Source: Schmidtea polychroa (Eukaryota). From it: a stretch of DNA of 64,000 nt. The notes under the pieces are model-generated. The model worked only from the letters and a program-made list of their open reading frames with translations. It was not told the DNA's origin and did no database searches. Shown piece after piece: positions 32,975-49,689 of this stretch; within the stretch, counting starts at the first letter, position 1; every line of letters begins with the position of its first letter. The stretch covers positions 35,526,001 to 35,590,000 of the forward strand of contig CM097888.1 in assembly GCA_044892525.1 (NCBI GenBank), given 5' to 3'. Position numbers and translations under genes: made by a program.

Positions 32975-35900
32975 TTCTTCACAATTATTCTTCACAAATC
33001 GTTTTCCCGATAACGTTTCGTCCGACTCTGTCTGATTTGTCAACTCGGTTTTGTCTCAATTTTTTGTCTAATTTTGTCTATAAGTTTCTCTTTATATAGC
33101 TTGTTTTATTTGTGGCACTAGAGATAATCAAATGTTTTCCACTTATCTTTTTCCTGTAGTTCCTGACTGTTCCCTGTTGCGAGCCTGACACGAGCGCGCG
33201 GTGATGTAAAAAATGTAGATACCGGAGTTGAGTACATCTCCATCTCTCACTATCCATCGTCCAACTAGGACACAAGAAGATTACCAATGAACGACTTAGT
33301 AGGAACTAATCACTTCTCGAAGGTCAATATCATTCATTATTTCTAACCTTTTAGTTTATAAACGTGGCTAAGGGCCTAAAAAGGTTTAGCGATTTCATTG
33401 TATGAAAGTGAATTCGTCTTTTGAAGATAACAAAAGCAAATACAAATTCAATTCAAAACTTATTTCGCATAATGACATTCTAGACTAGATATACGAAAAC
33501 AAATTCTTACTTCTTCAAGCTGGCACAAATTTCAGCATTAAATTGCGACTAAAATGTATCAGTATTTATGTTTATTCACATTTATGGTTATAAAATTATA
33601 GATAAAAAAATTATTATACTTTATATATTGTTTTGATATATAGTCTTACAAACATATAAATAGAAATTATTAAATATTCAAAGACTCTATGACCAAATAC
33701 GTCAGAAACCCTTCTTTGCCTACATAAAATACTGACCTCACAAGTCCATGTACAAAAATGCCTAAAACTATAGTGAGCCTATAAATTTTCTAGAAAATAA
33801 TGCGACCAAATATCTTTGTGAATTTTCCAGTGTTTTTTACGAGAAACAGATATCGGGCTCCAAAACCCGAGATCAAAATATCCCTTGATATAGTGTATCC
33901 TTCACATTGACATAATCATAGTGTTAACAAGTTTTCAAAATTGTGAATATATTTTCTCAGATACAATTTCAAGAACTTTAGAAGATCCTGTTGAGAAATC
34001 ATATCGTGGCATATAAAAATTGTGAACTAGATGCGGACAAAAATTTTACATTAACCGAAGTTGTGGGAATTCAAAAAGATAAATCTTTGCATGAAGCAAT
34101 ACAATCTTTAAATATTTCTATCAGTGGCTTAGCCAAGAATTTATGAAGGGGGAGTTGGAGTTGAGAAATATTTATTAATATTAAGGTCAATAGCCAAAAT
34201 AAAATAAATAATCACAATGTACTGAGAGTACAGACAGATGTCACCGCAAATAAAATAAAGGAAGTGTCTTGTTTTTTTCTTATTTAGGTAGATGATCTTT
34301 TAGGCACTTGGCGTCGACAAATATTTGTACATGAAAAATCTAATTGGGTAGAGGGGTGTGACCCCTTCCCCTTGGCTACGCCACTGATTTCTATTCAGTA
34401 TTTTGAAGAAACCTAGACCAAGAAATTTTTCTTGCTTTCGTTTTATTTTGAAAACAGTTTAGAGAAACTAGTACAACAGAGTTTCACTGTTACCAGTAAA
34501 TGTTTGTAGTCTGTGTTAAGTACACTATCTTCAAAAAGTACAAAATTGTATGATAAGAGGTGTACTTCTTGGACAGTTTCTACATCATCAACTTTATATT
34601 TTTTCCGATTTATGTTCCAAATTACAATCAGGTATATTAAAAAAAATTCCATAACTAGAATAAAATAAAATTCAGCAATATGTGAGGCACAATTAATAGA
34701 TGAATTAATATTTTGTTTCAAATTTATTTCAACCTTCATTATATATTATCAATAACAATTATTAAAACTGGATTCCGCCAACAGATTTCTTTAATCAAAT
34801 AAATAATAAAAATTCAATTAAAAACTCAATATTAAATGTTATTGATATCAACATATTCAATTTTCACAATCGCAATCAATAATAGTTGTGATGTGCTGCT
34901 CCATTATGCATATATAAATCTGGTTGTGGATACATGTTATTTCCACCATTATATTGAGGGGGAGGTAATTGATAATTATTTCCTTGTGGCACCACTGGCA
35001 TTGGTGGACGACTGAAATTTTGTTTACGCTCACTTCTTGGTATATATCCAAGATCATATAAACTATCTGAAACTGATTGATTAGCTTCTTCCATCACTTT
35101 CACCAATTGACGAACCTATACATATTAAATCAGTTAAAAATTCAACACAATTAACATTATAAACTTACACTTTTTGAATTCTTTCTATTGAGAAATGTGT
35201 AAGACACTCCAGATTTTCCTCGACGGCCTGTTCTACCAATTCTGTGAATGTAGTCTTCAAATTGAATTGGGAAATCATAATTGATTACAACTTTAATATC
35301 GTCAACATCTGAAAATTAAAATTTAATTGAAAAGTGGATCAAAAATCATTGTAAAATTAAGCAAATTTATTTATTCGTCAACAGCTTAAAATGTCTGAGT
35401 CTAACTTGAAATCTTACTTGTCAAAGTTAGCCGATAATTTTAAGCCAATTGAAAATGATACATCATGTTAACGCATTGATTAGCGGTTTGGTTATTCATC
35501 TGATCCAACCAATCAGAATTAGAAAGACCAAGCAACCAATCCAATATCTTTCATAATGAAAGTGCGCAAATATGTTATTGAATTCTCACAGAAAATCAAT
35601 ATCGACATCTCATACTGTTAAGTAAAGCAAAATCAATTGCTCATTGTAACCCAACAACAAATGCCGATGAAATCAATTCTGTAACGAATTCAAAAGTATA
35701 TTTACAAAACAGAAAATATAAATACATACCTAAACCTCTACTTGCTACGTCTGTTGCCACGAGAATATTTAATTGCTCACCTCGAAATCCTTTAGATTAT
35801 ATTAATTTTCATTTCACAATGCAATTTTAACATTACCATTAAGAATATACTCTCTGTCGCTTTGTGACTTATCGCCGTGCATTGCACCAACTCTGAATTG

Positions 35901-37134
35901 TTTCGAGCGTAGAAAAGAACAAATCATATCAGCTTTCTTTTTTGTTTCTGCAAACACAATCATTTTGTCACGTGGAGTTTTGCTCACAATTTCTAACAAT
36001 CGTCTATCCTTTGCATGCTCTTCTAGAATTTCAACAATTTGTTCAATATTTGGATTCGCATGCAAGTCCTGTGATCCAATATTGACTTGAATATATTTAC
36101 CGAGGAAGTCTTGAGCTAATCTCTGCACTTCTTTTGGCCAAGTAGCTGACCACATCAAAGTTTGTCGATCTTGTCTTACTTGACTGAATATTTTTCTGAT
36201 TTGAGGTTCAAATCCCATATCTAACATCCTGTCAGCTTCATCAAGTACAACATAAGTAGTTCTGTGAAGATTTGTAATTGATGATTTCAACAAATCTATC
36301 AATCTTCCAGGAGTGGCAACGATGATTTCTGCACCATTTCTCAATTGTCTAATTTGATCTCCTTTATTTGCTCCTCCATAAACACACACCGAACGAATTC
36401 CTACTGATTCGCAGAAATCAGTTGCTACAGTCTGAACTTGTTGAGCTAATTCACGAGTTGGAACAACTATTAAACAAATCGGCCCATCACCCCTTCTCAG
36501 TGCTGGTTGAGCTTTCAAGTGCACAATAGCGGGAATCAAATAACTTGCAGTTTTTCCTGATCCAGTTCTAGCAACACCAACTAAGTTTCTTCCACTCAAT
36601 GCCATTGGTAAACCTTGAGCTTGAATTGGTGTTGGTTCATTCCATTTATTTTTTCGAATAACTGAAGTGATTTCACGAGAAAGATCTATTTCGTTGAATG
36701 AAAATATTGGTTTATTGATATTGTCTCCTTTTACAGTCATTTCTTTCATTCGACGATAATTTTCAATTTCTGTTCCACTTCTGTTTGAAACAATTGGATT
36801 TTCTCTATAGAAATTCTTCTCAAATGGAATGAGATTCTGACTATTCCAATCGACACTATTTAATGTTTGTTCATCTCTTCTGTTATCTCTACTTCTAAAT
36901 TATTAATTATGGATTTTAAAATAAATTATTAATTTGCATTACCGGTATGAATGTCCACTTGGAGGTGATCTAGATCTATCATTGTGTCTTGAACTACTTC
37001 CGTTATATGACCTCCTATCTCTGTTGCTACTATATCCGTCATTGTATCCATTTTGACTATATTTATCATTTTTCTCGCTCAAATAATCATTTTTATCGTT
37101 TCGATAATCTCGCCTCTCACCACGTTGTTCGTAT
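32975..37134 (-). repeat. Left arm of large inverted duplication
   Basis: Reverse complement of 41393..43833 (L+R=78527 throughout) and of 47481..~49190. Outermost 32975..33580 is LTR/leader-like and visibly diverged. Confidence 0.95.
34122..34386. mobile_element. hAT-type MITE (left-arm copy)
   Basis: TIR cagtggcttagccaag / cttggctacgccactg; 8-bp TSD atttctat. Confidence 0.9.
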
Positions 37135-37166
37135 TTGTTATTTGTATTATAGTAGTTATTCGACAT
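34876..37166 (-). CDS. DDX5: DDX5/DDX17 (p68/Dbp2)-like DEAD-box RNA helicase, copy A; exons 37166-36943, 36894-35837, 35789-35730, 35308-35169, 35115-34876
   Basis: FEKNFY, Q-motif [50 protein letters not shown] and [12 protein letters not shown] introns give an uninterrupted frame. DDX5 vs DDX17 cannot be resolved. Confidence 0.93.
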
Positions 37167-47849: not shown

Positions 47850-48118
47850 CAGTGGCGTAGCCAAGGGGAAGGGGTCACACCCCTCTACCCAATTAGATTT
47901 TTCATGTACAAATATTTGTCGACGCCAAGTGCCTAAAAGATCATCTACCTAAATAAGAAAAAAACAAGACACTTTTTTCCTTTATTTTATTTGCGGTGAC
48001 ATCTGTCTGTACTCTCAGTACATTGTGATTATTTATTTTATTTTGGCTATTGACCTTAATATTAATAAATATTTCTCAACTCCAACTCCCCCTTCATAAA
48101 TTCTTGGCTAAGCCACTG
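47850..48118. mobile_element. hAT-type MITE (right-arm copy)
   Basis: Same insertion as 34122..34386 (TSD atagaaat), 4 nt longer in a T tract. Confidence 0.9.
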
Positions 48119-49689
48119 ATAGAAATATTTAAAGATTGTATTGCTTCATGCAAAGATTTATCTTTTTGAATTCCCACAACTTCGGTTAATGTAAAATTTT
48201 TGTCCGCATCTAGTTCACAATTTTTATATGCCACGATATGATTTCTCAACAGGATCTTCTAAAGTTCTTGAAATTGTATCTGAGAAAATATATTCACAAT
48301 TTTGAAAACTTGTTAACACTATGATTATGTCAATGTGAAGGATACACTATATCAAGGGATATTTTGATCTCGGGTTTTGGAGCCCGATATCTGTTTCTCG
48401 TAAAAAACACTGGAAAATTCACAAAGATATTTGGTCGCATTATTTTCTAGAAAATTTATAGGCTCACTATAGTTTTAGGCATTTTTGTACATGGACTTGT
48501 GAGGTCAGTATTTTATGTAGGCAAAGAAGGGTTTCTGACGTATTTGGTCATAGAGTCTTTGAATATTTAATAATTTCTATTTATATGTTTGTAAGACTAT
48601 ATATCAAAACAATATATAAAGTATAATAATTTTTTTATCTATAATTTTATAACCATAAATATGAATTAGCATTTTAGTCACAATTTAATGCTGAAATTTT
48701 GTGTGCGATTATAGTTTTGAATTGAATTTGTATTTGCTTTTGTTATCTTCAAAAGACGAATTCACTTTCATACAATAAAATCGCTAAACCTTTTTTGGCC
48801 CTTAGCCACGTTTAAAAACTAAAAGGTTGGAAATAATGAATGATATTGACCTGCGAGAAGTGAACAGTTCCTACTACGTCGTTCATTGGTAATCTCCTTG
48901 TATCCTAGTTGGACGATGGCTAGTGAGAGATGGAAATGTACTCAACACCCGGTATCTACATTTTTTACATCACCGCGTGCCAGTGCCAAGCTTGCGACTG
49001 GGAATTGTCGGTAAATGCAGGAGAAAGAAAACTGGAAAACATTTGATTAGCTCTAGTGCCACAAATAAAACAAGCTATATAAAGAGAAACTGGTAGACAA
49101 ATTTAGATAAAATCGAGATGATAAATCAGACAGAGTAGGACGAAACATTATCGGGAAAACGATTTGTGAAGAATAATTGTGGAGAATAATATGATTTAGC
49201 AGAGTTATTCCAGAATCTCTTGTCTTCTCACCTGTCATCCTCTTCTTGAACCCGAGTCTGCACTCTAATGATATTCCATACTGGTCTGATTTTAAAGCGC
49301 TTGTTCAATTGCCTGCTCCACAAAATCATTACGCTGCTTGTACATAAAAATTCTTATCGTCTCTAGCTTTATCACCACCTTTTCAAGAGTTACGCTCTTA
49401 TTCTGAAGGTACAGCTGTGTAAGAGGTCGCAAAAAAGAGGTAGCACTGGGACAGGAACGCAGAACGGGCCTCTGGAAAAAGTACTCGTGACCACCGCCGT
49501 TCTAATTTCATGGAGTGACATAGAATCATAGACAGTGATATTTTTCATTTTGGTGTCACGCTTTATGATGGATATTTTTGCTTTCCAAGACATGGTCTTT
49601 TATGGAAAATTTTAGGATATTTAAATATATATTAAGTTAATCAAATGTTAAATAATTTTCATTGAATTACGGTAGGACCTGCCAAGATA

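Follow-up and report, generated by a model that had tools for sequence, protein, structure and literature searches.

The genome of the planarian Schmidtea polychroa harbors a gene-bearing palindrome, which was analyzed in a window of 64,000 nt (CM097888.1:35,526,001–35,590,000; all coordinates given below are positions in this window). Two genes encoding DDX5/p68-like helicases are located in its inverted arms, and the arms share a near-identical core of 3,555 bp. Based on the outer flank of the arms, whose identity climbs towards the core, and on a diverged spacer haplotype carrying one of the palindrome junctions, we propose with moderate confidence that the locus represents an older inverted duplicate, whose arms would have remained identical through gene conversion between them, with heterology as the limit on either side.

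Structure of the palindrome and its near-identical core

A repeat search returned one dominant inverted pair, 34694–37151 versus 41376–43833, accompanied by further inverted pairs outside of it. Base-by-base comparison of 34694–37134 and 41393–43833 confirmed what the original prediction had described, namely reverse complements with a constant coordinate sum (78527) and without any indel over 2,441 bp including all four introns. Instead of the single substitution predicted (43796 vs. 34731), two were counted in this interval, 34731/43796 (A/T) and 36492/42035 (C/T), and mismatches accumulate immediately beyond 37134/41393. Whole arms were delimited by BLAST and global alignment to 32971–37134 on the left and, as the inverse, 41393–49191 on the right. 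The previously proposed limits of the repeat (32975–49190) were thereby recovered to within a few bases (32971 and 49191), and the inverted repeat exceeds the extent that had been given for it.

After removal of insertions in the right arm, the near-identical core comprises 33580–37134 in the left arm and 41393–43833 (inner part) plus 47481–48661 (outer part) in the right arm, the two substitutions corresponding to 0.056%. Outward of 34694, the core continues for 1.1 kb (33580–34698 vs. 47481–48661, zero substitutions) and is interrupted in the right arm only. Three insertions are private to this arm: four A's (47975–47978), 52 bp (47513–47564) and 3,647 bp (43834–47480). These arm-private insertions show that the arms are separate loci, and they are later than the last homogenization. 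Identity of the core takes in the four introns (569 bp) and 1,296 bp of 3' flank, i.e., 1,865 non-coding bases. The substitution 36492/42035 affects a third codon position and is synonymous, the translations of the 311-amino-acid (aa) open reading frame (ORF) on exon 2 being identical; 34731/43796 is located in the 3' region, adjoining the second polyadenylation signal. At 36492, the window has C, but T was present in every contig across the four sequencing runs introduced below, including that of a related species. The C may therefore represent a consensus error or a private variant; in case of an error, the arms differ by one substitution.

The arms enclose a spacer of 4,258 bp (37135–41392), within which no significant arm-to-arm similarity was detected. 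It had been described as a unique spacer of 4.26 kb, which is correct regarding its length and the lack of arm-repeated sequence and does not hold genome-wide, as parts of it reach high-copy word depth. In the run X1, very high summed word depths were obtained for 37928–38118 (~400,000), 39265–39455 (~4,300) and 39647–40028 (~11,000), compared to ~80 for single-copy sequence, and these stretches are probably dispersed repeats. The family represented at 39647–40028 also occurs at 34031–34604 within the left arm, at the mirror position in the right arm and at 49624–49964. The spacer ORF at 38582–38863 has no Pfam match, nor does the spacer contain any other Pfam-matching ORF. Rfam families were found neither in the arms nor in the introns or the spacer.

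Occurrence of the palindrome in independent read sets

In order to evaluate the assembly, contigs and unitigs (k = 31 graph) of four public runs were aligned to positions 36400–42100, namely X1 and X5, which originate from different studies, the RNA run X7 and the RNA run X32 of a related species. X1 may be the assembly's own sample, and contig depths are approximate. In X1, a 430-nt unitig (depth 76.1, zero differences) starts at 37105 and continues into the left spacer, a unitig with a depth of 161.8 starts exactly at 41393, a further arm unitig has a depth of 191.6, and the spacer unitigs range from 78 to 84. Accordingly, arm depths of 161.8–191.6 face 76.1–83.9 for junction and spacer unitigs (161.8 vs. 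76.1 + 83.9). This is the pattern of a two-copy repeat ending at 37134/41393, in which a shared double-depth node is followed by two single-depth continuations. Depth over the arms had been proposed as a check along with the original prediction; since the approximate contig depth of the X1 arms is about twice that of junction and spacer, two copies exist. In X5, the arm unitig (record 18) ends exactly at 37134, and a 299-nt unitig (record 23) spans 41124–41422, i.e., it leads from the right spacer into the arm. The palindrome was thus directly observed in independent read sets. An inversion of the spacer between the identical arms would not alter either of the junction sequences.

It was also considered whether each arm represents a copy of a mobile element into which a helicase gene had been captured. 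This was rejected because the depth is only twice the single-copy value and neither bounding terminal repeats nor a target duplication are present.

The helicase genes encoded on the two arms

The left helicase gene is located on the minus strand (34876–37166; exons 36943–37166, 35837–36894, 35730–35789, 35169–35308 and 34876–35115) and encodes 573 aa, the right one on the plus strand (41349–43651; exons 41349–41584, 41633–42690, 42738–42797, 43219–43358 and 43412–43651) and encodes 577 aa. Both copies consist of five exons and four GT..AG introns in the same open frame and are arranged head-to-head around the spacer. The exon set given for the right copy is the only GT..AG combination preserving both the frame and the conserved helicase motifs. 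Intactness and head-to-head orientation of the copies, as previously described, were verified. However, the translations, which had been reported as identical, are so only from EQRGERRD (residue 13 in the left, 17 in the right protein) onwards: identity stops within exon 1, and the first 12 and 16 residues, respectively, differ, including an in-frame length difference of 12 nt.

Pfam searches assigned DEAD (5.5e-50) and Helicase_C to exon 2 and the remaining part of Helicase_C to exon 4 (1.8e-08), and the catalytic DEAD-box motifs are intact in the translations of both copies. Among named proteins, matches to DDX5, DDX17, p62 and Rm62 were obtained at 54–60% identity, the closest ones originating from flatworms (55–60%). 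Among solved structures, DDX17 6uv0 (1e-121), Dbp2 8ark and DDX5 4a4d scored best, ranging from 1e-121 to 1e-102, and DDX46 is weaker by 35 orders of magnitude. Judged from these predicted proteins, the helicases are members of the DDX5/DDX17/Dbp2 (p68) subfamily, with which domains, motifs and closest relatives are all in agreement. Neither this locus nor DDX5 duplicates in planarians were encountered in a literature search.

Furthermore, the protein search revealed two close proteins, P0001 (90% identity) and P0002 (83%). Contigs approximately 89% identical to exon 2 aligned to 36400–36909 in X1, X5 and X7, with an X1 depth of 302.7 compared to ~80, i.e., about four times the single-copy value, and a transcript of the related species shows the same differences. 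Because of this depth and the differences common to the relative's transcript, a second, probably multi-copy DDX5-like lineage is present elsewhere in the genome, to which P0001 may belong. A protein search with the exon-1 ORF of the right copy, seeking left- or right-type N-termini, yielded no match.

Transcription of the two copies and the probable parent gene

An X7 RNA contig (record 26) carries the left N-terminus and a 5' untranslated region (UTR) extending to at least 37203, has intron 1 (36895–36942) spliced out and bridges the left boundary; the depth of the left 5' end in X7 is 6.5. For the private 5' end of the right copy, no contig was found in X7 or X32, and X7 depth in the bin 41366–41556 is zero, X7 being the one, shallow RNA run of the species. 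X32 contributes only record 15 to this bin, which starts at 41506. The assumption that both copies are transcribed was therefore substantiated for the left copy by its own 5' end in the X7 RNA, and the right copy lacks a 5'-end transcript in both RNA runs, a result that does not imply its silence.

Regarding the related species, one transcript contig (X32 record 10) is 88% identical over 37013–37174 and covers the left-private N-terminal codons and 8 nt of the leader, and another one (X32 record 15) is 95% identical and has the same intron spliced out. Because the relative's transcript matches the left-private N-terminus and leader, the left-type 5' end is regarded as ancestral on sequence grounds, and the helicase lineage as older than the species split. 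Likewise, the left copy is probably the parent, since its 5' end matches the transcript of the related species. A length polymorphism was noticed at 37166–37175, where a T/A run just upstream of the left start codon is 2 nt shorter in X5 and X7.

Outer flank, spacer haplotypes and proposed homogenization of the arms

Outward of the core, the arms continue with diverged flanks of approximately 600 bp, 32971–33579 on the left and 48662–49191 on the right, which are homologous at 82–94% identity with indels (BLAST E = 4e-170 for 32971–33469). Identity amounts to ~85% over 33000–33199 and ~94% over 33200–33460, including the final 55 bases, which are identical. This gradient is significant (27/187 vs. 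16/260 mismatches, Fisher p = 0.005). An indel-rich patch at 33461–33579 separates the outer flank from the ~100% identical core. The step in identity was observed directly: at 6–14% divergence, 210–500 differences are expected in the core, and two were found (Poisson P(≤2) < 1e-88). By a GENECONV-type criterion, the identical tract is too long for the divergence of the adjacent homologous sequence, and this applies to the outer side only. BLAST detected no other copy of the outer flank within the 64-kb window. Similarity between the arms ends at approximately 32971/49191, beside a short 15-nt tandem repeat, whose unit occurs 3.7 times at 32945–32997, exactly on the left outer limit of arm homology.

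Information on the age of the duplication was obtained from spacer contigs of X5, which deviate from the window by 1–3% (records 19, 21, 22 and 23 with 7/438, 9/453, 15/694 and 3/299 differences, respectively). At 40948, X5 contains a variant allele (depth 25.2) together with a reference-like allele. Since X1 has only the reference form at this position, the X5 variants are considered to be alleles or strain variants and not paralogous repeats. Record 23, with its three differences, carries the right junction, and the X5 arm contigs differ from the window at 36492 only. The junction was accordingly observed directly on a spacer haplotype diverged by 1–3%, from which it follows that the duplication is older than the haplotype split and that the arms were homogenized afterwards. 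Without exchange, 20–54 arm differences are expected in the non-coding part of the core (1,865 bases), and one was observed (Poisson P ~4e-8 at 20).

Because the outer flank lacks further copies in the 64-kb window and its identity rises towards the core, and because of the diverged X5 haplotype, conversion between the arms is the favored reading; its mechanism, the direction of events and the cause that stops the tracts are what we infer here. An initial inverted duplication of a DDX5/DDX17/Dbp2-type gene would have covered about 4.2 kb, from ~1.9 kb past the stop codon to ~12 codons into exon 1. Subsequently, the arms may have exchanged sequence repeatedly by intrachromosomal non-reciprocal recombination, presumably via repair of breaks in one arm with the other arm serving as template. 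The latest event or events would have homogenized the entire uninterrupted block of homology, with the inner tract limit set by the end of homology at 37134/41393 and the outer one by the indel-rich patch at 33461–33579, which may block heteroduplex extension. The gradient in the outer 600 bp could originate from older, shorter or rarer exchanges. After the last homogenization, the right arm would have gained the hAT-like transposon described below, the 52 bp and the four A's, and one or two substitutions would have arisen. An older duplicate under concerted evolution, as originally predicted, is thus better supported than a fresh copy, namely by the outer flank and the X5 haplotype; that half of the reasoning that referred to the inner flank does not hold.

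Points against conversion and the inner edge of the arms

Several observations weigh against conversion as the explanation of arm identity, among them the nature of the inner edge. The break at 37134/41393 is abrupt and lies inside exon 1. Beyond it, no similarity above that of 300 shuffles was found for five segments of the inner flank (local alignment z from -0.6 to 0.8). The original prediction stated that the flanks on both sides are homologous and diverged, which is true for the outer flank and does not apply to the inner one (z < 1 compared to shuffles). The inner boundary therefore has the appearance of a simple breakpoint of the duplication, and support for an older event comes from one flank only. 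Moreover, the outer flank, whose copies were searched within the 64-kb window, could represent a dispersed repeat. Three arm-private indels versus one or two substitutions represent a high ratio for arms still exchanging sequence. The arm comparison was made within one species, the sister-species locus lying outside of it. Finally, contigs were judged from alignment tables and not from their sequences, and the junction unitigs enter the arm by 30 letters, which equals the k-1 overlap at a repeat boundary and is one letter short of the bridging rule.

Both copies start with ATG-TCN-AAT in frame, and the following 29–41 nt are strongly different, with a length difference of 12 nt. This shared start is the sole hint of former homology extending slightly past the inner break and may also have arisen by chance (~2%, a post hoc estimate). 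Inner homology reaching 37430/41095, as suggested by permissive BLAST, was rejected, since local alignment scores were indistinguishable from those of shuffled sequences.

Alternative explanations

The strongest competitor is a single, very recent partial inverted duplication without any conversion, which we consider doubtful. According to this explanation, a template switch or break-induced replication between pre-existing inverted repeats of ~600 bp, the present outer flanks, would have copied 3.56 kb in inverted orientation and rejoined it without homology at 37134/41393, and the right copy would owe its start to a chance in-frame ATG and have no promoter of its own. Such an event agrees with the abrupt, homology-free inner break, the nearly substitution-free arms, the absence of a right 5'-end transcript in X7 and X32 and the left-type transcript of the relative, and it has been cautioned that partial duplications mimic conversion (PMC3966223). 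It is, however, hard to square a junction on a 1–3% diverged spacer haplotype with identical arms and an arm divergence of 0.056%. Moreover, no further copy of the outer flank occurs in the 64-kb window, its identity rises coreward instead of being uniform, and the in-frame ATG-TCN-AAT is common to both copies with the chance probability mentioned above. A single sequence looks the same for an old converted duplicate and a fresh partial duplication, and it is only the haplotype argument that disfavors the latter.

An assembly artifact, in which one real helicase copy was doubled by a fold-back read, a haplotype mis-join or consensus collapse, is very improbable. Near-identical arms are what it predicts, the C at 36492 occurs in none of the runs, so that at least one assembly base is doubtful, and one of the supporting read sets, X1, may stem from the assembly's own sample. 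Nevertheless, unitigs of two studies terminate precisely at 37134 or start precisely at 41393, the continuations at these two points differ, and arm depth is about twice that of the junction. Fold-backs also have neither a non-repeated spacer of 4.26 kb nor different outer flanks nor three private insertions, among them a transposon with an empty site in the other arm. Next to impossible is an old duplicate that remained identical by purifying selection alone, without exchange: DDX5-type helicase cores are highly conserved, but identity spans all introns, synonymous sites and 1.3 kb of 3' flank, and the adjoining outer flank is 6–18% diverged. Protein constraint is insufficient for such a pattern, and this candidate was rejected. 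Homogenization of an older duplicate by conversion hence remains the preferred explanation.

An extension of conversion that we regard as improbable treats the pair as a "mosaic twin", with exchange confined between two heterology barriers, so that the copies have the body, introns and 3' end in common and private N-termini and upstream regions. The right tail and promoter could then have been recruited from spacer DNA, and the second copy might provide an isoform under different regulation or, while itself silent, a template for the repair of an essential, dosage-sensitive helicase gene. The exchange may be driven by breaks that the resident, apparently intact hAT-like element introduces. A link to the dosage autoregulation of Dbp2/p68 known from yeast, to which the original prediction referred, is hypothetical.

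Insertions in the right arm and neighboring features

The largest insertion in the right arm is a hAT-like transposon of 3,647 bp (43834–47480, minus strand), bounded by 15-nt terminal inverted repeats (43834–43848 and 47466–47480) that occur nowhere else in the window. Its transposase ORF (44155–46572, 805 aa) is open and matches DUF4371 (7.9e-21); the hAT dimerization domain scored 19.2 bits, under the cut-off of 21.4. The target duplication TAATA comprises 5 bp (43829–43833 and 47481–47485), not the 8 bp of the hAT superfamily, and can be read unambiguously because the left arm retains the empty site (34694–34698). The element is located ~180 nt past the stop codon, near the position where cleavage is expected downstream of the AATAAA at 34728. 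The filled and empty sites date the insertion as very recent, and the element was probably active recently.

The 52-bp insertion (47513–47564), likewise restricted to the right arm, is flanked at its edges by a 5-bp duplication (ATTTT, plus strand) and occurs as a single copy in the window. It has imperfect inverted ends of ~8–9 nt and lies 27 bp from the site of the hAT-like element. It could be a tiny miniature inverted-repeat transposable element or a repair footprint.

Elsewhere in the window, a second hAT transposase ORF containing zf-BED and a hAT dimerization domain (9203–11161), exons of an SPT16/FACT gene (17461–19902) and a piggyBac-type DDE ORF (26572–27579) were identified. Just left of the palindrome, a zinc-knuckle (gag-like) ORF (31551–31826) is located in a strongly strand-skewed stretch at 30–33 kb.

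Comparison with known systems and implications

Inverted paralogs homogenized by conversion have been described for several organisms. Drosophila Hsp70Aa/Ab constitutes such an inverted pair under conversion. In C. elegans, the inverted hsp16-48 modules and an adjacent inverted heat-shock gene pair are inverted paralogs subject to interlocus gene conversion, with reported tracts of 12–2,958 bp, and for Caenorhabditis paralogs it was pointed out that partial duplication may mimic conversion (PMC3966223). The planarian locus resembles these invertebrate pairs in that adjacent genes of opposite orientation are only a few kb apart, identity extends into introns and some flank, the edges are sharp, and detection relies on a GENECONV-type criterion, i.e., an identical tract beyond the divergence of the flank. 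It differs from the C. elegans pairs in tract length, 3.56 kb lying at the upper end of what has been reported, and from the invertebrate pairs in general in that a DDX5/p68-type helicase of a planarian is concerned and the boundary inside exon 1 leaves each copy with an N-terminus and an upstream region of its own.

Palindromes of mammalian sex chromosomes have arms of ~9 kb to 1.45 Mb. With these, the locus shares arms of more than 99.9% identity, a non-duplicated spacer, intact genes on both arms and conversion as the invoked process. Its arms are smaller, measuring ~4.2 kb, and nothing in the data, which include a single RNA run of the species containing the gene, points to a sex-linked or non-recombining location or to germline-specific expression. 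At human disease loci, rearrangements of the DUP-TRP/INV-DUP type arise by a switch of template between inverted repeats that were already present. The planarian locus would be similar if its outer flank is a repeat, since one of its junctions would then lie within a pair of diverged inverted repeats and the other one is free of homology. However, a young event is predicted for this type, whereas the junction found here is common to a haplotype diverged by 1–3% in the spacer.

Homogenization of adjacent inverted paralogs by conversion is already well known, e.g., from the hsp16 and hsp70 pairs of nematodes, and the locus most likely represents a further case in a new place, which changes nothing in the known evolution of such pairs. 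Somewhat unusual are the 3.56-kb tract, the boundary in exon 1 and the very recent hAT-like insertion with its 5-bp duplication. Short-read mapping and expression quantification will collapse or mis-assign the twins, since they are distinguishable solely by their 5' UTR and their first 12 or 16 codons. Furthermore, the palindrome offers a small and clean natural setting in which intrachromosomal gene conversion could be measured in a planarian, with the transposon, two private indels and the different 5' ends available as markers. Planarians include fissiparous asexual lineages, and their inheritance proceeds via somatic stem cells; the rate at which duplicates are homogenized or eroded by non-allelic exchange is therefore of some interest in these animals.

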